IMG/VR virus record: IMGVR_UViG_3300005529_000001
Span: 62,001-126,000 of that record
DNA length: 64,000 bases
Strand: one strand, 5' to 3'
Positions 4,803 through 62,291 of this stretch are shown in pieces (the stretch's first letter is position 1; the number at the start of each line of letters is the position of its first letter). Below the pieces are notes generated by a model that had not been told where the DNA came from, did not search any database, and saw only the letters and a list, made by a program, of their open reading frames with translations. Position numbers and translations under genes: made by a program.

Positions 4803-5105
4803 TTACACCGGGAGGCGGTCGTTGTAGGTGATGCTGTCCGCCTCATGGAGCGTCCAGTAGAGGTCCCAGTCGGCGTCCTCCAGGTTACGCCAGTCCTGGA
4901 TCCCCGGGTCCCAGACCGCCCATGAGATGAAGCTGATCTCATAGCAGGAGGAGAGCAACCGCGTGCCGTCGGGGGAGAGCGAGAGGGTGTGGTAGCCTTC
5001 CTCGACCTTGTTCTGTTCCTCCGATTCCATGACGTCGTCCGTCAGGCAACCGGGGAAGAGCCGCGCTGCTTGGTCCGGGGTGAGGCGCTTGAGGGTGATG
5101 TCCAT
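4803..5105 (-). CDS. acidic hypothetical protein
   Basis: cassette promoter + ORF. Confidence 0.75.
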   Translation of the reverse strand: MDITLKRLTPDQAARLFPGCLTDDVMESEEQNKVEEGYHTLSLSPDGTRLLSSCYEISFISWAVWDPGIQDWRNLEDADWDLYWTLHEADSITYNDRLPV

Positions 5106-5164
5106 GACAGCATCCTAACACGCGCGTGCCCGACCTTTCACAGATCGGGCACGAGTTTTGTTGG

Positions 5165-5344
5165 TCAGTGGTTGTCGTTGGTCCGGACCCCGATGTACGG
5201 TCCCCAGTCGTCTTGGTACTCGGAACGTGGGATGAGTTCGATGTCAAACGCGACGGACGGGTCGGTGTCCATGGACAGTTCCTTGTCACCGTGACCCTCG
5301 GACACGAGGGCGTCAACCATCTCCTTCAGGTCGTTCAGTGTCAT
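5165..5344 (-). CDS. 59-aa acidic protein, GC-dinucleotide-depleted gene
   Basis: not in ORF track; MTLNDLKEMVDALVSEGHGD...; own promoter; only 2 GC dinucleotides, both Ala codons. Confidence 0.75.
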   Translation of the reverse strand: MTLNDLKEMVDALVSEGHGDKELSMDTDPSVAFDIELIPRSEYQDDWGPYIGVRTNDNH

Positions 5345-5618
5345 GAACCGAATCTACCACGAGTCGTTGCCTGTTTTCACCGAAAGACGCGCGGACCTGT
5401 CGCACCCAGTCCTGGGCATCGTAGAGACCGGCTTGCGCAGCGAGCCCATCGAGCTCATCAAGCTGGTCCTGGAGTGACTTCTGCGACTGCGGCTTGGTCC
5501 CCATCAGCTTCCTCCGGCGCTTTTCTCGACGGTCACCGAGCCGTTCGAGGGAGAGCCCTATCACGAAGATGGCAACGAACATGACGATAACGCCGTGGAA
5601 GAAGCACGTCTCGTCCAT
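5313..5618 (-). CDS. membrane-anchored hypothetical protein
   Basis: cassette promoter; N-terminal TM segment. Confidence 0.65.
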   Translation of the reverse strand: MDETCFFHGVIVMFVAIFVIGLSLERLGDRREKRRRKLMGTKPQSQKSLQDQLDELDGLAAQAGLYDAQDWVRQVRASFGENRQRLVVDSVHDTERPEGDG

Positions 5619-7861: not shown

Positions 7862-8116
7862 TCACTCCGTGACGACGTTGCCGCGCTTGTCGTAGCGGAC
7901 GACGCTGTCAGCACCCGTCCCGTCCTGCGACGGCTCACCGACGACAGTGGTCTGGGTCACTTCAGACCAACCACCGGTCCCGTCGGGGACGTCAAGGCGC
8001 TGGGTGACCTGGACAGCGTTGCAGTTGTTGCAGACGTGGATGATGAGCCCGCCTCGAGAGCGAAGGGACTCGACCATGGCTGACCTGGGAAAGCGGTGCT
8101 TGGTGCAAGTGTCCAT
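7862..8116 (-). CDS. small Zn-binding protein
   Basis: CxxH...CNNC; cassette promoter. Confidence 0.75.
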   Translation of the reverse strand: MDTCTKHRFPRSAMVESLRSRGGLIIHVCNNCNAVQVTQRLDVPDGTGGWSEVTQTTVVGEPSQDGTGADSVVRYDKRGNVVTE

Positions 8117-8148
8117 GTCAGCATCCTACCATGATCTGCGTTGGTCTT

Positions 8149-8403
8149 TCACTCGTCGTCGTACTTCACGTACTCCGCCTTGATGGCGACGGTGTAGATG
8201 ATGTGCCCCTTCGGGGCGCCGGTGCCCTTCTGGTCGATGTCCTTGCGCATGGTGAACTCGCACGTGGTGGGCGTTCCGGGGGCGGTCAGGTCAACCACCG
8301 CGTTCGGGTGGGCGTCCAGCGAGTCAATGAACGGGTCCATCGGCGCCGCGAGCTCGCACGCGTCGATCATCGCCTGGGCGACCTGTATCAGGTTGGTGTC
8401 CAT
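8149..8403 (-). CDS. hypothetical protein
   Basis: cassette promoter + ORF. Confidence 0.75.
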   Translation of the reverse strand: MDTNLIQVAQAMIDACELAAPMDPFIDSLDAHPNAVVDLTAPGTPTTCEFTMRKDIDQKGTGAPKGHIIYTVAIKAEYVKYDDE

Positions 8404-8435
8404 GGTGTCAGTCTACCACGATCTGCGCGGCGCTT

Positions 8436-8690
8436 TCACCAAGTGCGGCGCTTCGTGTAAACAGCAAAGACGCCCTCCGTTGTGACGGACGCCCACACCC
8501 GCATCCAACCGTTGGCTTCCATGTCGGAGTCAGACTGTGACGACGTGCCGCTCGGGTAGGGCAACACCCGGGTGACGAAGGTGTCGCCACCGCGCTTTTG
8601 CGCAGCGCTAACGGGTGGGTCGATGTCGACCGAGCGTCCCGTTGTGCGGTCGAGAATGACGGTGTCTTCGGGAGAGAATCTGTTGTCCAT
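8436..8690 (-). CDS. hypothetical protein
   Basis: cassette promoter + ORF. Confidence 0.75.
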   Translation of the reverse strand: MDNRFSPEDTVILDRTTGRSVDIDPPVSAAQKRGGDTFVTRVLPYPSGTSSQSDSDMEANGWMRVWASVTTEGVFAVYTKRRTW

Positions 8691-16788: not shown

Positions 16789-17436
16789 TTACTTCAGGAA
16801 GATGTGGTTCTCCGAGATGAGTCGGTTGTACACCTCCAGACGGGACTCCTTGTACTGGTCGTCGAGTCTCGAGATCCTCCCGTAGTGGAGGAGACAATGA
16901 CACTCCGACTTCGGAACACCCATCCCGACGAGGACCTCGGTCTGGGTCTTCTCCCACTCCTTCTCCTCGTTCATCATCCGGAGGACGATCTTCCAGTTCG
17001 GGTCGTCGGTGTCCTTGTAGTCGGGGTGACGATCGAAGAGACCCTTGGACATCTCGTCGAACATCTTCTCGAGGGTCGACCGGAGGGTCCCCAACTTGAC
17101 GGGGTCGGTCTTCTTGTTCTGGGCGAGGTAGAGGACACCCGTCCAGTCCTTGATCTCCTCGTTGACGACACGAGGAGAATCTTCCTCCCCACACTCCCGG
17201 AGATGGGTCATCGAGTTGAGGACGCTCTCGGCGACCTCGGGGGTGACGTTGAAGATCTTCACCACCTGGTCCTTGACGACCTGACGGTTCTTCTCTTCGT
17301 CCTTCTTGTCCAGGTACGACCCCCACTCTGGGAGTTCGTATTCCACACTCCGGACTGTGACTTCGTCATCGTGTCGGTACGCTTCGTACACTGTCCAGAC
17401 GATGTCTTTGACGGCCGAGCGGGTGAGACGCTTCAT
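16789..17436 (-). CDS. 215-aa charged protein, GC-dinucleotide-depleted gene
   Basis: leadered promoter with GGAGG SD; 7 GC dinucleotides in 648 nt; 4 Ala. Confidence 0.85.
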   Translation of the reverse strand: MKRLTRSAVKDIVWTVYEAYRHDDEVTVRSVEYELPEWGSYLDKKDEEKNRQVVKDQVVKIFNVTPEVAESVLNSMTHLRECGEEDSPRVVNEEIKDWTGVLYLAQNKKTDPVKLGTLRSTLEKMFDEMSKGLFDRHPDYKDTDDPNWKIVLRMMNEEKEWEKTQTEVLVGMGVPKSECHCLLHYGRISRLDDQYKESRLEVYNRLISENHIFLK

Positions 17437-17479
17437 GTGTCCTCCAGTCAGACCAGTCTACCACGACTGGCGTGATCTT

Positions 17480-17794
17480 TCACCGTCTCTCGACGACTTC
17501 CAGCGTCAGCATGCGACCGAGCTGCGGATTGAAGGCGCGGAACGCGCCGCGCTTGCCGTCGCTGTCTCGCTCCTCGACCCACAGGGTGAGGACGGGCTCC
17601 TTCCACTTCTGGGTGAAGTAGATGCCCCTGAACTTTCCGGTGAAGTGGCGAGGGTTGATACCCTCGCTCACCGAACGAGCGGCTTCCTGCCGTGCCTGTG
17701 GGCCGGGACGCCTGCCCGCGAGGTAGGAGACGAAGACGGTGGAGTTGAGTGGGACGTCCTTCAACGCTGCGACCATCTGCTTGCCGTTGACCAT
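17480..17794 (-). CDS. hypothetical protein (possible SH3/WYL-like fold)
   Basis: cassette promoter; C-terminal FRAFN motif. Confidence 0.7.
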   Translation of the reverse strand: MVNGKQMVAALKDVPLNSTVFVSYLAGRRPGPQARQEAARSVSEGINPRHFTGKFRGIYFTQKWKEPVLTLWVEERDSDGKRGAFRAFNPQLGRMLTLEVVERR

Positions 17795-18052: not shown

Positions 18053-18553
18053 CTACATGGTGAACATGACCGCGTGGGCTCCCGGCTTCCCGGGATCGAC
18101 CTTCAGCAAGCGCTTGCACGCCTTGCCGATGCGTTCGATGTCACTCGCGTGCTTGGTGATGTCCTTGAGCGAGGCGAACTCGTCCTTGGTCGAGACCTTC
18201 AGCGACTCGAGGCAGACGTAGATGCCGCAGCCGTTGTAGAAGTCACCGATCACCTGGACGGAGCAATCCAGCGCCTCCTGGAGCGCCTCGATGATCCAGT
18301 CCTCGGGGCACCAGTTCTCGGGGTCGAAGCCGTCAGCGCACGGTCCCTCGTACGTCTTGCCGCAGATGACGACGTCGTATGACTCCTCTTCGTCGATCAC
18401 CACCTCGGGGATCTCGAACTTCTTGCCGGTCTTGGGGTCGAACCTGTCTTCCTTGTGCGACTTCTGCGGGTGACGCTGCAACAGCTTCTGGAAGAAGCTC
18501 TGTAGCGGGATGACATAACCGATGACGAGTTCTGCGCTGCGGTCGACGCTCAT
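18053..18553 (-). CDS. hypothetical protein
   Basis: leadered promoter, GGAG SD. Confidence 0.75.
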   Translation of the reverse strand: MSVDRSAELVIGYVIPLQSFFQKLLQRHPQKSHKEDRFDPKTGKKFEIPEVVIDEEESYDVVICGKTYEGPCADGFDPENWCPEDWIIEALQEALDCSVQVIGDFYNGCGIYVCLESLKVSTKDEFASLKDITKHASDIERIGKACKRLLKVDPGKPGAHAVMFTM

Positions 18554-22132: not shown

Positions 22133-22211
22133 GGTCCCAACCTACCACAAAAAGGATCGCGGGTGCACACCCGCGCCCGCGCCCACGCAATGGCTCATCG
22201 ATGAACCCACA

Positions 22212-22241
22212 GTGCAACCAAGAGTTCATCGATGGTACACT
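22212..22241 (+). promoter_or_regulatory. cassette promoter with no downstream ATG
   Basis: GTGCAA-N18-TACACT. Confidence 0.7.
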
Positions 22242-22247
22242 GGACCC

Positions 22248-22355
22248 AATCCGCTTGAAGCTGGCCTGGAGAGCGAGCCCTGGTCCGGGAGGACGGCGGG
22301 GAGCCACGCAGCCTGCCCAACGGTTGGGCTCCCCAGAAAGCGCTGCCCGTCCACA
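22248..22355 (+). ncRNA. candidate small RNA
   Basis: between two promoters; GGACGG/CCGTCC and GGGGAGCC/GGCTCCCC stems, alternative GCCCAA/TTGGGC hairpin. Confidence 0.45.
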
Positions 22356-22428
22356 CCGTCTGTGCAACCCCCGGTGCTTTCCTGGTAGACTGGGACCATC
22401 AACGCTCCACCACCCCGGAGGAAACACA

Positions 22429-23250
22429 ATGGCTGGCATGAACCTGAAGGTGGCCCGAGGCTTCGCCCTCGGCACCCGCCGATCGACCATCAAGGTCCCA
22501 CCCGAGCTCCGCGTCAAGCACTCGACCGGCATGGACTGGCTCGACGACGTGCTGGGCAGCGAGGGCGGTGTCACCGCCTCGTCTGTCATCATGCTGACGG
22601 GCGGTCCCGGCTGCGGCAAGAGCACCCTGATCCGGCAGCTGGCCAACTCGATGGCCCGCGACGGCTCGACGCTGCTCCCCATCTACAACTGCGGCGAGGA
22701 GAGCCTGTTCCAGGCTGAGCTCGCCAACGAGCGGCTGCAGGTCACCAACGACTTCATGGTCGGTGAGGAGACGGAGCTGCCCAAGCTGCTGACCTTCGCC
22801 GACAACGTGAGGAAGGCCAACCCGAAGAAGGTCGTCACCATCCTGCAAGACAGCCTCCAGACCCTGAACGACATGAAGTACAAGGACGGCGGCACCACGG
22901 GCAACACCCCGGTCCGCTGCGCCGAGGCGCTGGTCAGCTGGTCGCAGGAGAAGGTGGGCAACTTCGGCCACGTCTGGTTCGTCGGCCAGGTGACGAAGGG
23001 CGGCGAGTTCGCCGGCAAGAACGTCATCAAGCACGCGATTGACGTCCACATGCACCTGTTCTACGACGAGGACAAGAAGTCGGCGACCTACGGCATGCTG
23101 CTGGGCGAGGTCCAGAAGAACCGCTGGGGTTGCAACGGCAAGACCTACATCCTCGGCCTGACCAAGACGGGCATCGAGGAGCGCGGCTCCTTCACCAAGG
23201 GCCAGGACTTCGACGTCGACGGCAAGGAAGACGAGGGGGAGGCTGCCTGA
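22429..23250 (+). CDS. RadA/Sms-like RecA-family ATPase (ATPase domain only)
   Basis: Walker A GGPGCGKST, GEES, DSLQT, GQVTKGGEFAG, KNRWG; own promoter and GGAGG SD. Confidence 0.85.
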   Translation: MAGMNLKVARGFALGTRRSTIKVPPELRVKHSTGMDWLDDVLGSEGGVTASSVIMLTGGPGCGKSTLIRQLANSMARDGSTLLPIYNCGEESLFQAELANERLQVTNDFMVGEETELPKLLTFADNVRKANPKKVVTILQDSLQTLNDMKYKDGGTTGNTPVRCAEALVSWSQEKVGNFGHVWFVGQVTKGGEFAGKNVIKHAIDVHMHLFYDEDKKSATYGMLLGEVQKNRWGCNGKTYILGLTKTGIEERGSFTKGQDFDVDGKEDEGEAA

Positions 23251-48283: not shown

Positions 48284-51200
48284 ATGATCAAGTGCCAGAT
48301 GTGCCGCGGCTCTGGGTGGTACCAGTCGTCGCCAGGCAACAGGAGCCAGTGTCCGTATTGCAACGGACGTGGTAGCATCAACGAGAACTCGCCCAGCGAG
48401 CAACGTAGAGCTCGTGACTTCGAGTCTTTCTATGGCGATGACCTCAATCGAGCTGGTTATAGCACGAAAGAGATCAGCCGCATCTTGGAGGAGAAGTCGG
48501 GCCAGATCGTACAAGCGCTGAAGACGATGCCTGTGAAGGGCCCTATCGCTTCGTCTCAGGTCGGTCGCCCGCCCCAACTTCGTCCCACACGAGTGCCATA
48601 TAAGCTTGACTCTGACGAGAAAGAGCGGCTCAGGCAACTTCGTGATCCTTCGCAACAGACTTTGCCTCCGACGCAGGCAACATCAACTGATGTAAAGCGC
48701 CAACAAACAGAAGTAGTTTCCAGTCACACAACGGCGAAAGCCACAGAAAAGAGAGCAGACATCATGGGAGAAGACGACATTCGCGGCCGACGGGCGCAGG
48801 ACATGATCCTAGCCCCGAACGAGTACGCATACATCAGCGACGAGACCAAGGGCGAAGTCAACGTCTTCGTCGGCCCCAACAAGCAGTCGCTTGCGGGCAC
48901 TGACCAGATGGTCAAGTTCGACACCAAGACGAAGCGGTTCTCGCCGACGTCACGTGAACAGGGCAACCAGCTGTTCCAGACGGCTCCCGAGGGCTGGTAC
49001 GTCGTCCTGAAGAACCCGGCCGAGGGCGACAAGCACCCGGCTGGCAGCGGCAAGCTATCGACCCCCACCCTTCGGGTCGGTAAGAAGGTTAACATCTCCG
49101 GTCCCTGTTCCTTTGCTCTCTGGCCCGGTCAGATGGCCAAGGTCGTCCAGGGCCACTCGCTGAAGTCGAACGAGTACCTGCTGTGCCGGGTCTACGATGA
49201 AGAGGCTGCACGGGCCAACTGGTCCAAAGCAGTCATCAAGACGCAGGGCGAGGCAACGACGGGTGAGGGCGCAGATGCAACTCCGAAGAACCAGCGTCCC
49301 GCCAAGGTGGTGAAGGCTGGCAGCGAGATCCCGTCCGAGGGCGAGCTCACGATGGGCAAGCTCTTCGTGGTCCGTGGCACTGAGGTCTCCTTCTACATCC
49401 CGCCGACGGGCATCGAGGTCGTCGCTGATGGTGAGAAGTATGTCCGCGAGGCCGTCTCTCTGGAACGCCTCGAGTACTGCTTGCTCCTCGACCAGAACGG
49501 CAACAAGCGATACGTCATCGGTCCCGACGTCGTGTTCCCGCGACCGACCGAGAAGTTCGTCGAGGCGCCGATCAAGTCCAACCCGGACAAGGTCAAGGCC
49601 AAGAAGTTCCGTGCCCAGGAGCTGACTCCAACGAGCGGCATCCACATCCGCGTCATCTCGGATTACACCGAGAAAGACGGCACCAAGCGCACCGCGGGTG
49701 AAGAGCTCTTCATCACGGGCAACGAGCAGCCGGTGTACTTCCCCCGTGAGGAGCACGCCATCATCAAGTACGGCGAGCAGGATGTCCACTACGGAATCGC
49801 GATCCCGCCGGGCGAGGCTCGCTACGTGCTGAACAGGCTCACCGGCGAGGCGAGCCTGGTCGACGGTCCGAAGATCTTCCTTCCCGATCCCCGGACGCAA
49901 GTCATCCTCCAGCGCGCCATCCCGCTCGACATGTGCGCTCTCCTTTACCCCGGCAACGAGGAGGCTCTCGCGATCAACGCGGCTCGCCTCGGCGTCGAGG
50001 ACCAGGACTACATGGGTGCTGGTGGAGCAAACGCCGCGTTCCTCAACAGCACTTACGAGCGTAACGCTGGCGAGAACGAGGCCTATGCTGCGGTCGCTGC
50101 AGCGGCTCCGAATGACACCGCTCGCGGTCGCATCCTGATCAAGTCGGCGAGCAAGTCCCTTCCGGGCGACGCCTTCGATCGGAAGGCGAAGTTCACTGCG
50201 CCGCGCTCCGTCATCCTCAACACCAAGTACGACGGCGCCATCGGCATCAACCTCTGGACCGGCTACGCCATGCTGCTCGTCAGCAAGGGCGGCAAGCGCC
50301 GGGTAATCCAGGGACCGGGCACCTTCATGTTCGAGTACGACGAGAACCCGCAGCTCATCTCGCTGTCAACGGGCAAGCCGAAGTCGACCGACAAGCTCTG
50401 CAAGACGTACTACTTGCAGGTCACCAACAACATGGTCAGCGACATCGTCGAGGTCGAGACCAGGGACTTCTGCCGGCTCACTGTCAAGCTGAGCTACCGA
50501 GTCAACTTCGAAGGCAACTCCGAGAAGTGGTTCGCGGTTGACAACTACGTCAAGTTCCTCTGTGACGCGATGCGGTCACGCATCCGCTCCGCGGTGCAGA
50601 AGCTGGGCATCGAGGAGTTCTACGGCAACCACACGCCAATCCTGCGTGACATCATCCTGGGTGCCAAGCCCGCCGAGGGTGGCGAGCGCACAGGCACCAT
50701 GTTTGCCGAGAACGGCATGCGAATCTACGATGCTGAGGTCCTTGGCATCCAGATGCAAAACCAGGACGTCGAGAAGCTCCTGGTCGCTGCACAGCGGTCC
50801 GTCATCCAGAACACCCTCGTCCTTGCTGAAGAGCGGCGCAAGCTGGACTTCGTCAAGGAGACCGAGGAGCTCAAGCGGGAGACAGCTTCCGCTCAGGCCG
50901 AGACGACCCGGGCAACCCTCGAGTTGCAGCGAGTCAACGCCCAGCGCAAGCTGGAGCTTGACCTGGCCCTGATCGCCAACAGCGCCAAGCAGCAGAGCGA
51001 GCAGCTTGCTGTCGAAGCAGCAACGACGGCAGCCCGAGCCACTCTCAACCTGGCCAACGAGAAGGCCGCGGCGGAAGTTGCGGCAGTCGAGCTGGAGACC
51101 GCTGAAGCCCGTCAGGCTTCGGAACGAACGCACCAGGCCGCCCTACAGGCCCTCGAGCTCGCCAAGCTCACGGCCCAGACAGAAGCGACCAAGGAGAAGG

Positions 51201-51436
51201 CAACCGCCATCAGCCCGCAGCTAGTCGCGGCGCTAGAAGCGGCGGGCAACAAGGAAGTGGCGATGAAGCTCGCTGAGTCCTTCAACGTGCTGGGCATCAT
51301 CGGCGGCGGCAAGAAGAGCGTCGCCGAGATCTTCAGTGAGCTGCTCAAGGGCACCGTGCTGGGCCCCCAGCTCGCCGCGGTGGTCAAGGGTGAGAAGAGC
51401 GAGTCGAACGGTTCGAGCAAGACGGCTCGAGCCTGA
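48284..51436 (+). CDS. major vault protein (MVP) homolog with N-terminal Zn-finger extension
   Basis: MVP-type repeats (LAPNEYAYISD..GEV..FVGP; RYVIGP; GIHIRVISDY..KDGTKRTAGEELFITG; YVLNRLTGE..LVDGP); shoulder domain LSTGKPK...SDIVEVETRDF..L.VKLSY..NF...F.V.NYV..LC.A..SRIR.AV...F.ENG; long Ala/Glu-rich cap helix; second possible start at 48764. Confidence 0.85.
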   Translation: MIKCQMCRGSGWYQSSPGNRSQCPYCNGRGSINENSPSEQRRARDFESFYGDDLNRAGYSTKEISRILEEKSGQIVQALKTMPVKGPIASSQVGRPPQLRPTRVPYKLDSDEKERLRQLRDPSQQTLPPTQATSTDVKRQQTEVVSSHTTAKATEKRADIMGEDDIRGRRAQDMILAPNEYAYISDETKGEVNVFVGPNKQSLAGTDQMVKFDTKTKRFSPTSREQGNQLFQTAPEGWYVVLKNPAEGDKHPAGSGKLSTPTLRVGKKVNISGPCSFALWPGQMAKVVQGHSLKSNEYLLCRVYDEEAARANWSKAVIKTQGEATTGEGADATPKNQRPAKVVKAGSEIPSEGELTMGKLFVVRGTEVSFYIPPTGIEVVADGEKYVREAVSLERLEYCLLLDQNGNKRYVIGPDVVFPRPTEKFVEAPIKSNPDKVKAKKFRAQELTPTSGIHIRVISDYTEKDGTKRTAGEELFITGNEQPVYFPREEHAIIKYGEQDVHYGIAIPPGEARYVLNRLTGEASLVDGPKIFLPDPRTQVILQRAIPLDMCALLYPGNEEALAINAARLGVEDQDYMGAGGANAAFLNSTYERNAGENEAYAAVAAAAPNDTARGRILIKSASKSLPGDAFDRKAKFTAPRSVILNTKYDGAIGINLWTGYAMLLVSKGGKRRVIQGPGTFMFEYDENPQLISLSTGKPKSTDKLCKTYYLQVTNNMVSDIVEVETRDFCRLTVKLSYRVNFEGNSEKWFAVDNYVKFLCDAMRSRIRSAVQKLGIEEFYGNHTPILRDIILGAKPAEGGERTGTMFAENGMRIYDAEVLGIQMQNQDVEKLLVAAQRSVIQNTLVLAEERRKLDFVKETEELKRETASAQAETTRATLELQRVNAQRKLELDLALIANSAKQQSEQLAVEAATTAARATLNLANEKAAAEVAAVELETAEARQASERTHQAALQALELAKLTAQTEATKEKATAISPQLVAALEAAGNKEVAMKLAESFNVLGIIGGGKKSVAEIFSELLKGTVLGPQLAAVVKGEKSESNGSSKTARA

Positions 51437-51518: not shown

Positions 51519-53435
51519 ATGGATGTTTTCAGCTCACACCTCGGCCTCATCATTGGGGGCGTGGTCTTCCTGTTCGCGGTGTTGCTCCATCGCATGGTGC
51601 TACGCCTTTTCGGGATGGTCGTCATCCCCGAAGACGGCATCGGCATCGTCACAAAGAAGTTCGTGCTCTTCGGAACCAACAAGGTCCTGCCTGACGGAGC
51701 CGTCGTCGCTCTCCAGGGCGAAGCTGGCGTCCAGGCTGACACCCTCGCGCCGGGCGTTCACTTCGGTCTCTGGCCTTGGCAGTTCGACATCGCAGTCCAG
51801 AAGTTCGTCACCATCGCCCGAGGCAACCTGGGTGTTGTCGTCGCTCGGGACGGCAAGGCGATCAGCGGAGGTCGCATCTTGGGCCGCACCGTCGAGTGCG
51901 ACTCCTTCCAGAACGCCAGGCAGTTCCTGCAGTCAGGCGGCGAGCGCGGACCCCAGCTAGCGATCATCCCGCCCGGGACCTACCGCATCAACACCGGGCT
52001 CTTCACCATCCAGATGACTGACGTCACCGAGGTCCATGACAACATGGTCGGCGTCGTCACCACCAAGGAGGGCCAGGCTCTCGACACGGGTGCCATCGCG
52101 GGACCCGAGGTCCCCGATCACAACATGTACCAGGACCCGCAGAAGTTCCTGAACGGCGGTGGCCGCAAGGGTCTCCAGGAGCAGGTGATCCTGGCGGGAC
52201 GTTACTACATCAACCCGCTCTTCGCCACTGTCGAAGAGGTCGCGATGACAGAGGTCCCCATCGCCCAGGCAGGCGTCGTCATCGCCTTCGTCGGCAAGGA
52301 AGGCGTCGATGTCACAGGTGACTCGTTCAAGCACGGCAACCTGGTCAGCAAGGGCCAGCGTGGTGTCTGGGCCGACCCGCTCGATCCCGGTCGCTACCCG
52401 ATCAACCCCTACACCCACCGGGTCGAGAACGTGCCGACAGCAAACATCGTCCTGAACTGGGCGACGGGCAAGTCGGAAGCTCACAACCTCGACAAGAACC
52501 TCAGCACCATCACGGTGCGGTCCAACGACGGGTTCACGTTCAACCTGGATGTCTCGCAGATCATCCACATTCCCAGGGCCAGCGCCTCGAAGGTCATCGC
52601 CCGGTTCGGCAACGTCGCCAACCTGGTCACCCAGGTCCTGGAACCGACGATCGGCAACTACTTCCGCAACGCGGCACAGGGTTCCGACGTCATCAAGTTC
52701 CTCGGTGCCCGCCAGGAACGCCAGAACGATGCCAAGAAGTCGATCGGTGACGCGCTCAATGACTACGACGTTGTCGCGGTTGACACCCTGATCGGAGACA
52801 TCACTCCGCCGAAGGAGCTGATGAAGACCCTGACTGACCGCAAGATCGCTCAGGAAGAACAGGCAACGTTCCAGACCCAGCGCCAGGCGGAAGAGCAGCG
52901 CAAGGACCTCGAGCAGGCCCGAGCGACCGCAGCCACCCAGGCCAAGGTCGTCGATGCCGAGCGGAAGGTCGCCATCGCTGAGTTCGAGGCCCAACAGGCG
53001 GTGAAGAAGGCCGAAGGTGACTCTCGGTCGATGGTCATCAATGCCAGGGCCAGCGCCGAGATGGACGTCGTCAAGGCCGAGGCGGCAGCGAAGGTCAAGA
53101 CGGCGATCGCCGAAGCGGAAGCCAAGGCAACCGTCCTCAACGGTGATGCCCAAGGCAAGTCGATCGCCGCGGTTGGTACCGCAGAAGCCGCGGTCATCAA
53201 GGCCAAGGCGGACGCGGTCGACCAGACCAACTACGCTACGATCGAGGTCGCTCGGGCTCTCGCCAATGGCAAGCACCCGCTCGTTCCCCAGATCGTCGCA
53301 GGCGGCGGTGGCGAGGGCGGGGGCATGAACAACCTGACCAGCGTCCTGATGGCCAACCTCATCGACAGGGAGAGCCACCAGCCAAAGGTGAACGGCACTG
53401 CAACTCGCAAGCCCTCCGAGAAGTCGTCAGACTGA
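51519..53435 (+). CDS. SPFH/flotillin-family membrane protein
   Basis: N-terminal TM; repeated GVV...G.Q...L.PG.Y.IN units; SPFH core (ITVRSNDGF.F.LDVSQI...VLEP.IGNYFRN); AEA-rich coiled coil; LVP.I..GG tail. Confidence 0.9.
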   Translation: MDVFSSHLGLIIGGVVFLFAVLLHRMVLRLFGMVVIPEDGIGIVTKKFVLFGTNKVLPDGAVVALQGEAGVQADTLAPGVHFGLWPWQFDIAVQKFVTIARGNLGVVVARDGKAISGGRILGRTVECDSFQNARQFLQSGGERGPQLAIIPPGTYRINTGLFTIQMTDVTEVHDNMVGVVTTKEGQALDTGAIAGPEVPDHNMYQDPQKFLNGGGRKGLQEQVILAGRYYINPLFATVEEVAMTEVPIAQAGVVIAFVGKEGVDVTGDSFKHGNLVSKGQRGVWADPLDPGRYPINPYTHRVENVPTANIVLNWATGKSEAHNLDKNLSTITVRSNDGFTFNLDVSQIIHIPRASASKVIARFGNVANLVTQVLEPTIGNYFRNAAQGSDVIKFLGARQERQNDAKKSIGDALNDYDVVAVDTLIGDITPPKELMKTLTDRKIAQEEQATFQTQRQAEEQRKDLEQARATAATQAKVVDAERKVAIAEFEAQQAVKKAEGDSRSMVINARASAEMDVVKAEAAAKVKTAIAEAEAKATVLNGDAQGKSIAAVGTAEAAVIKAKADAVDQTNYATIEVARALANGKHPLVPQIVAGGGGEGGGMNNLTSVLMANLIDRESHQPKVNGTATRKPSEKSSD

Positions 53436-61960: not shown

Positions 61961-62291
61961 CGTCAGTCTCCGTAGTTGCGATCATTGCGTTCCACTCTTC
62001 GTCCTTGCCTTCTACGATGCGGATGGCTTCTTCGTGTCGCCGTCGTCGTTCTTCGCGTGCGTCTCTCCGACGTTGCAAGATGCCCTTTCGCCATTTGGAG
62101 AAATTCTCTTGGACCCAAATGATCGGAAGCACGATAGCTGCAACAACCATAAAGAGAGGCCAGGCTATCGCGATCAACGGGTAAGGAAGTCGATCGCTGT
62201 CATTTGTGTCGTCAAAGAACGCTGCCACAGCGCAGGCAGGATAGCCTAGCACGTAGACAATCAGGAACAACCACCAATACCAGTGCATCAC
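61920..62291 (-). CDS. membrane protein
   Basis: two TM segments with WP motif; charged tail. Confidence 0.65.
   Translation of the reverse strand: MMHWYWWLFLIVYVLGYPACAVAAFFDDTNDSDRLPYPLIAIAWPLFMVVAAIVLPIIWVQENFSKWRKGILQRRRDAREERRRRHEEAIRIVEGKDEEWNAMIATTETDDGDQTHEARTAVS

Follow-up and report, generated by a model that had tools for sequence, protein, structure and literature searches.

Genomic setting and features of the locus

The DNA stretch analysed here (64,000 nucleotides, hereafter the window) spans positions 62,001 to 126,000 of a virus record that is 369,475 bp long and carries direct terminal repeats; L019, from the JGI soil metagenome contigs, is the same record. The genome is that of a soil jumbo phage (369 kb, 56% G+C) in which the dinucleotide 5'-GC-3' (GC in what follows, as distinct from G+C content) has a near-normal odds ratio of 0.94. 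Small minus-strand genes form a block from position 1 to about 28,000 of the window, and one of them, the 59-aa gene of Table 1, is our subject. An earlier reading made from the letters alone (the sequence-only reading) had described it as a gene missed by the ORF track, with an acidic product, lying in an interval purged of GC from 5151 to 5368. The interval was recovered by measurement; at 59 aa the gene falls one residue under the 60-aa default of the ORF lister; the protein is indeed acidic (pI 4.1; 14 D+E versus 4 K+R); and the gene is real, having a family of homologues with conserved residues in independent samples.

Table 1. Coordinates of the features discussed (window positions unless a locus or genome handle is given; GC denotes the dinucleotide).
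Feature	Position	Strand	Remarks
Next gene's promoter	5112-5141	-	Predicted to drive leaderless ORF 4803-5105
Inverted repeat	5125-5153	-	After the stop of the 59-aa gene; 9-bp stems; the -35-like element of the promoter that follows lies in the loop
GC-poor interval	5150-5368		2 GC (5250, 5310) in 219 nt; bounding GCs at 5149 and 5369
59-aa ORF	5165-5344	-	ATG start, TGA stop; acidic; 2 GC, the minimum possible; family of at least 30 metagenomic proteins
Upstream ORF, 101 aa	5313-5618	-	N-terminal hydrophobic segment; 3' tail overlaps the promoter and first 32 nt of the 59-aa gene
Promoter of the 59-aa gene	5351-5380	-	Sigma70-type; -35-like GTGAAA 5375-5380; extended -10 TGGTAGATT 5351-5359
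215-aa ORF (first purged example)	16789-17436	-	7 GC versus about 32 expected; 406-nt stretch without GC
Promoter of the 215-aa gene	17455-17483	-	Early-class motif; gene has an SD leader
86-aa acidic ORF, third purged family	L023:14069-14329	-	2 GC in 261 nt, its two Ala codons; directly upstream of the 59-aa homologue, one promoter for both
86-aa family homologue, 83 aa	L014:768-1019	+	Same position beside the 59-aa homologue
About 56 tRNA genes and tmRNA (tag ANDNGFADDVRLAA)	G000:C1:765-39338 (L026, L027); 265088-265457 (L036:19588-19957); 369136-369220 (L042:3636-3720)
NADAR (inside the tRNA cluster), two RNA-ligase-family genes, two N6/N4-type DNA methyltransferases	G000:C1:6905-7291; 208167-208715; 22144-22641; 203803-204501; 205052-205699	- (all)

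By mononucleotide expectation the 180 nt of the gene should hold 15.3 GC steps; there are two (gene positions 34 and 94), both in Ala codons (GCC and GCG), and the two Ala codons set the floor at that number. The count thus confirms the earlier statement that the two steps are unavoidable, and the codon list confirms the choices attributed to the gene: Gly is encoded by GGT, GGT, GGA and GGG, Arg by CGT and CGG, and Ser by TCC (four times), while GAA is restricted to sites before CTG or CTC and GAG occupies all other Glu sites; before these Leu codons GAG would create a GC across the codon junction. Import from an AT-rich source is ruled out: the gene is 58% G+C, and 47 of 58 sense codons end in G or C. 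The overlapping upstream ORF aligns with its L002 homologue over just 54 residues.

The start codon of the 59-aa gene begins 7 nt past the -10 element, and its mRNA is predicted to be leaderless. The underlying motif (GTGAAAG, a spacer of 13-20 nt, TGGTAnAnT) has 32 strict hits in the genome versus about 2.6 in shuffled sequence; the hits cluster at 60-90 kb on the minus strand, and in 17 of the 32 an ATG starts 7 nt past the -10, the arrangement of leaderless messages. A simple consensus scanner of the TTGACA/TATAAT type returned no promoter or terminator at the 59-aa gene, and the case for the motif is made by its recurrence and geometry. On these two grounds, the recurrent motif and the fixed distance to the start, the early promoter assigned to the gene by the sequence-only reading is upheld as a prediction. 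Homologues of the gene carry the same motif upstream and are either leaderless or provided with a GGAGG leader; in L014 and L023 the homologue is the downstream member of an operon of two genes (86 aa + 59 aa), and the purge spans the operon from its promoter.

About 22 promoters of this early type lie on the minus strand of the block between window positions 1 and 28000 (e.g. at 2280, 4552, 4779, 5112, 8123, 8410, 8697, 13739, 16312 and 21842). In most of them the ATG lies exactly 7 nt past the -10, implying that the mRNAs are leaderless, and the -35-like element often sits inside the loop of a hairpin trailing the previous gene. Within the block, three consecutive 84-aa ORFs (7862-8116, 8149-8403 and 8436-8690, together 7862-8690 on the minus strand) have their own early promoters and similar spacers, and may be tandem paralogues.

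GC depletion compared with the rest of the genome

The depletion was evaluated against an exact dynamic-programming null in which the amino-acid sequence is fixed and codons are drawn from a given usage. For the 59-aa gene the probability of two or fewer GC is 1.1e-3 with genome-wide codon usage, 6e-5 with the usage of the local early-gene block, and 1.4e-4 with that of 30 neighbouring genes, the last ranking it fifth among 533 genes. Genome-wide, these synonymous p-values show over-dispersion: 1.9% of the genes have values below 1e-3. Two points here could speak for chance or amino-acid composition, that is, for a short, acidic, Ala-poor protein that happens to have few GC steps: fixing the amino-acid sequence cuts the expectation from 15 to 7-9 GC, and a synonymous-only p of 1e-3 to 1e-4 is the fifth of 533 in an over-dispersed distribution for this genome. 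Against this, the 59-aa gene is the only one of the 533 that sits at its theoretical GC minimum, and none of 171,910 sliding 180-nt windows of 55-62% G+C outside the two purged units (mean 14.1 GC, sd 3.1) has as few as two.

The ratio of observed to expected GC is 0.24 for the 59-aa gene and 0.22 for the 215-aa gene, the remaining outliers being large genes with ratios of 0.66-0.82. A scan of all 2-mers and 3-mers across all genes likewise found GC at or below 30% of expectation only in these two. Other purged short motifs were sought in the same scan, which gave only A/T-rich words in G+C-rich large genes, a codon-bias effect. The proposal that avoidance of short words might serve to find genes of this kind thus holds for GC in this genome, where it singles out exactly two genes, and fails for other short motifs, for which it returned nothing. 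Taken alone, the evidence for a GC purge from this single genome is suggestive.

Conservation of the purge in the 59-aa family

An exhaustive HMMER search yielded seven relatives of the 59-aa protein at 53-67% identity, and a profile search extended the family to 30 members in metagenomes. Their alignment has 10 invariant columns, and all the proteins are acidic (pI 4.05-4.5). A megablast of the phage collection with the gene gave no match, nor did a related-locus search with the single 59-aa protein or a pattern scan of viral contigs. The sequencing runs that hold the sequence are soil and mine DNA metagenomes only, with no RNA run among them.

DNA was recovered for 11 further independent members, making 12 with the gene of the window. 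From these independent assemblies the GC counts per gene are 0, 0, 0, 1, 1, 2, 2, 2, 3, 3, 6 and 6, compared with 7-19 GC per 180 nt on their own contigs; one of the members with zero GC belongs to L043, a contig of 187 kb with just 39% G+C. When nine family genes are pooled, 22 GC are observed against 75 expected under codon shuffling (z = -9.1); among the dinucleotides strong depletion is seen for GC alone, CG, GG and CC being at expectation. Fisher combination of the per-gene p-values, each computed with the codon usage of the contig concerned, gives 9e-11. Synonymous-codon identity between members is 0.60, versus 0.56 by chance: synonymous sites are saturated, and the low GC must therefore have been maintained or re-selected rather than inherited.

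The homologues turn the case for a GC purge from suggestive to decisive, and on this comparative evidence we regard selection against GC in the transcription unit as established. Chance or composition is accordingly rejected by the windows, the pooled homologues, the saturated synonymous sites and the combined p-value; it would have to produce the same trait in twelve independent homologues, and the poverty in Ala (1%) that it invokes is itself common to three unrelated purged families. We consider it very improbable.

Other purged families and a shared slot

The sequence-only reading had presented the 59-aa gene as a second, unrelated case beside the 215-aa gene, and sequence comparison agrees that the two proteins are unrelated. 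Homologues of the 215-aa gene in L002, L003 and L004 (77-80% identity) are equally purged. The third family, of 86 aa, is unrelated to the 59-aa family, adjoins the 59-aa gene in two relatives, and has no homologue in the genome studied here. A 110-aa ORF at L044:11748-12080(+) has 8 GC in 333 nt at 57% G+C, the locus mean being 14.6 per 180 nt; it may represent a fourth, more weakly purged family, and no homologue of it was found among the loci examined.

In L045 (5483-6213) the 59-aa gene directly follows a homologue of window gene 18053-18553, and the slot after that homologue is held by the purged 215-aa gene in L002 (9390-10660), L003 (4862-6130) and L004. The 59-aa gene is absent from its syntenic place in L002 and L003. 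Mine-metagenome contigs (runs X3 and X4) match window positions 5161-5338 letter for letter, with an unrelated flank from 4 nt past the stop. A slot shared by the two genes is what interchangeable accessory genes look like, and judging from these arrangements the 59-aa and 215-aa genes appear to be mobile, interchangeable accessory cassettes.

Level at which selection acts

In the 59-aa family GC is removed irrespective of reading frame: NGC codons number 9 against 35.7 expected, GC steps across codon junctions 8 against 34.5, and Ala accounts for 1.0% of residues compared with 9.1% in neighbouring genes. The 215-aa family behaves alike (NGC codons 6 versus 51; junctions 3 versus 38; Ala 1.1%). 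Ala codons, NGC codons and codon junctions being hit about equally, selection must act on the nucleic acid and not on tRNA use. A ribosome-dependent, frame-bound nuclease, which would leave a frame-specific pattern, is excluded by the same frame independence. The avoidance of codons whose tRNA anticodons contain GC (Ala, Gly-GGC, Arg-CGC, Ser-AGC and Cys-TGC), for instance because such tRNAs are depleted or cleaved during infection, would account for the fact that every GC-containing codon is shunned, and the phage does carry a near-complete tRNA set. Yet such a translational cause would spare the codon junctions, which are as depleted as the NGC codons, and the non-coding flanks, which are purged too; it is rejected by the junction test and deserves very little credence.

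All four following-base contexts of GC are depleted, with observed-to-expected ratios of 0.11 for GCT (GCU in RNA), 0.18 for GCA and about 0.31 for GCC and GCG (heterogeneity test, p = 0.02). A by-product of selection on mRNA secondary structure could also be imagined, the GC/GC stack being the most stable nearest-neighbour pair. The dinucleotide profile is at odds with it, as CG, GG and CC remain at expectation, and so are the folding energies: native minimum free energies equal those of codon-shuffled versions in six genes (z from -1.6 to +0.8). We reject a structural by-product on both counts and attach practically no weight to it. Residual GCs are not enriched in predicted paired regions of the purged messages.

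The purge tracks the transcription unit. Across eleven purged units the mean number of GC per 30 nt is 0.29 inside, 0.27 at -1 to -30, 1.6 at -31 to -60 and 2-4 farther upstream; on the 3' side it is 0.45-0.6 in the first 60 nt past the stop and 1.9-2.8 farther downstream. Promoters of this early class are GC-poor in any case (0.92 GC per element), and the difference shown by those of purged units is weak (p = 0.04). The purge affects only a few of the roughly 22 early units of this class in the block; the selection is gene-specific. From the recurrence of the purge the sequence-only reading had argued for selection on the mRNA. Selection on the nucleotide sequence is sustained by the 12 homologues and the third purged family; the preference for mRNA over DNA is not, since GC is its own reverse complement and so gives no indication of strand or, with it, of RNA versus DNA, and the unit edges and flank profile do not separate the two either.

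Evasion at the DNA level has thus to be weighed: a GpC-free cassette of promoter plus gene would stay transcribable while a GpC-directed DNA activity (methylation or hypermodification, ADP-ribosylation, or nicking) marks or damages other DNA. The motif is palindromic, and the purge extends into the spacer of the promoter and into the promoter that follows; the last 30 nt before the predicted start are as GC-poor as the gene. Moreover, the phage encodes two N6/N4-type DNA methyltransferases and a NADAR, and phage C5-methyltransferases coupled to 5mC dioxygenases have been reported to prefer GpC for the most part (bioRxiv 10.1101/2023.12.21.572611). However, searches of the phage recovered no C5-methyltransferase, Tet/JBP or TGT/DpdA; the genome as a whole does not avoid GC, and palindromes with GC in them occur about as often as expected; a GC-cutting nuclease would destroy the remaining genome regardless of one cassette; and, next to the depletion within the unit, that upstream of the start is weak. 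We consider evasion at the DNA level unlikely, though worth keeping in view.

Phage gene content and candidate GC-directed activities

By profile search the genome lacks the C5-methyltransferase family PF00145 and TGT/DpdA of the 7-deazaguanine pathway; Tet/JBP (PF12851) was not found either, an absence that is weaker because its control also matched in no control genome. Phage-encoded GpC C5-methylation, TET and 7-deazaguanine pathways were set aside as candidates, their genes not having been found. Genome-wide restriction-site avoidance was likewise rejected, with GGCC, GCGC, AGCT and TGCA at 0.83-1.09 of expectation and the GC odds ratio as given above. Neither barnase/T1 nor macrodomain genes were found in the phage, nor an MqsR-like gene, whose control also matched in no control genome. 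A literature search for a GC-dinucleotide-specific RNase or RNA modifier found none, and we know of none.

Of interest in this context are the tRNA, tmRNA, RNA-ligase-family and NADAR genes listed in Table 1. The phage tRNAs cover nearly all amino acids, and one with a CUA anticodon would read UAG; two adjoining tRNA-like genes at G000:C1:336639-336792 (L040:11139-11292) have a four-base anticodon (ttca) according to ARAGORN. NADARs reverse guanine and cytidine ADP-ribosylation (PMC11543638, PMC12945103). Together the tRNAs, tmRNA, RNA ligases and NADAR fit a conflict with the host that involves RNA damage, which is circumstantial evidence. Elsewhere in the window, a 1050-aa protein (48284-51436, plus strand) with major-vault-protein shoulder and vault repeat domains (E = 7e-29) is followed by a 638-aa SPFH/Band 7 protein (51519-53435, plus strand), both of them unusual phage cargo.

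None of the 59-aa, 215-aa and 86-aa proteins has a match in Pfam, PHROGs or NCBIfam. An AF2 model of the 59-aa family, of modest confidence (pLDDT 67), comprises a helix plus two short strands and matches nothing in the PDB, and a structure search of the Atlas with it returned only unnamed viral clusters. The model of the 215-aa protein is confident only in its N-terminal 110 residues, which are helical, and has no structural match. For an antitoxin or RNase inhibitor of the Dmd or barstar kind, the searches gave no sequence or fold match to known inhibitors. The suggestion in the sequence-only reading that the product is an anti-RNase is not supported: searches assigned it neither family nor fold nor partner, and the phage yielded no GC-specific RNase.

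The GC-directed activity might also be the phage's own, for example a host shut-off RNase, with the purged genes as the protected set (the enzyme, its inhibitor, or products that outlast early shut-off). The 215-aa protein, which is without assigned function and has an N-terminal half confidently modelled as helical, might serve as the enzyme, regulated by the 59-aa protein; MqsR and MazF are known examples of toxins whose mRNAs lack the site that the toxin cleaves; and the phage supplies tRNAs, tmRNA and RNA ligases. Such an enzyme would, however, also hit some 530 other phage genes with normal GC, and searches with the 215-aa protein gave no RNase family or fold. Nor are the two genes always found together: in L045, L044 and L043 the 59-aa gene is present with no 215-aa gene within 6-10 kb of it, in L002 and L003 the situation is the opposite, and in L045 one purged gene replaces the other in the same slot. 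An activity encoded by the phage itself therefore seems to us improbable.

Comparison with known systems

A few bacterial toxin systems are known in which messages without the motif evade a sequence-specific RNase: the ghoT and mqsR messages are GCU-less, and ACA-less messages escape MazF. As in those systems, a short motif is missing from particular transcripts far beyond chance and independently of frame, and in the purged phage genes avoidance is strongest where U or A follows the GC, which recalls the GCU site at which MqsR is reported to cleave (PMC7781912). The phage genes differ as follows: the avoided word is a dinucleotide in all four following contexts; the purge reaches the protein level (Ala 1%); and it concerns phage early genes, conserved across a phage group, with no cognate nuclease known to us or found in the phage.

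Among defence systems, CmdTAC offers the nearest parallel in recognition. Its CmdT is described as an mRNA ADP-ribosyltransferase that acts at GA dinucleotides and blocks translation, which shows that no more than a dinucleotide in single-stranded mRNA can suffice for recognition by a bacterial effector against phages; the dinucleotide is GA there and GC here, and the accessible part of the source does not describe dinucleotide-free escape genes (PMC11618068).

The purged units can be set beside restriction-site avoidance in that a short palindromic word has been removed from DNA needed before countermeasures are in place. Phages are known to avoid restriction sites, and site-free DNA that enters first is exemplified by the first-step-transfer region of T5 and gene 0.3 of T7. 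Unlike these, the avoidance here is limited to individual transcription units, at about 67 and 79 kb of the 369-kb genome, and concerns a word of just 2 bp.

Small inhibitors of host RNases and other nucleases, such as T4 Dmd (about 60 aa) and barstar, and the acidic DNA mimics Ocr and ArdA, resemble the 59-aa protein in size and charge only, along with its predicted early expression; in sequence, profile and fold there is no similarity. The arrangement of the block brings to mind the PeSL of T4-type phages, cassettes of an early promoter and a stem-loop that flank small ORFs in plastic regions. Each small early ORF here has its own promoter, with a hairpin in the preceding intergenic space, and the plasticity is matched by a 59-aa gene that is 100% identical at another site, with another flank from 4 nt past the stop. 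The promoter sequence (GTGAAAG ... TGGTAnAnT) and the many leaderless starts set the present cassettes apart. Our search of the literature found no description of a conserved, near-total dinucleotide purge in selected phage early genes that reshapes amino-acid composition, and to our knowledge none has been published.

Interpretation and significance

Our preferred reading, to which we give slightly less than an even chance, is that the message of the 59-aa gene escapes a ribosome-independent, GC-directed activity that cuts or marks RNA and is probably the host's, and that its product is an accessory counter-defence or takeover factor. The 59-aa gene is a conserved accessory early gene of the phage, predicted to be transcribed from its own sigma70-type extended -10 promoter, probably into a short message without a leader. 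Its whole unit is kept free of 5'-GC-3' by purifying selection that acts on the nucleic acid. The likeliest reason would be that the transcript has to remain intact and translatable while the GC-directed activity operates in the infected cell. An endoribonuclease would fit that activity, as would an enzyme that modifies RNA bases; a defence effector of the host is the most likely candidate, against which the acidic 59-aa product may serve as a counter-defence factor, unless it is one of host takeover. The unrelated purged 215-aa and 86-aa genes may have similar roles. The gene, its promoter motif, the purge, the conservation of the purge and its frame independence are shown; action at the RNA level, a GC-directed effector and a part in counter-defence are inferred.

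A bolder version seems to us possible, if rather doubtful: soil bacteria may deploy an undescribed immune or toxin effector that cuts or chemically marks single-stranded RNA at bare GC, and a group of jumbo phages may answer with a few unrelated early genes (59, 86 and 215 aa) that are scrubbed of GC even at the cost of alanine, and whose products neutralise or bypass it. If so, dinucleotide purging would provide a sequence-only handle both for counter-defence genes and for the specificity of the effectors they face.

The purge predicts an uncharacterised GC-specific activity on nucleic acid, probably on RNA, and makes the three small protein families candidates for dealing with it. A simple composition scan combined with a check of homologues can pick such genes from unannotated viral dark matter.
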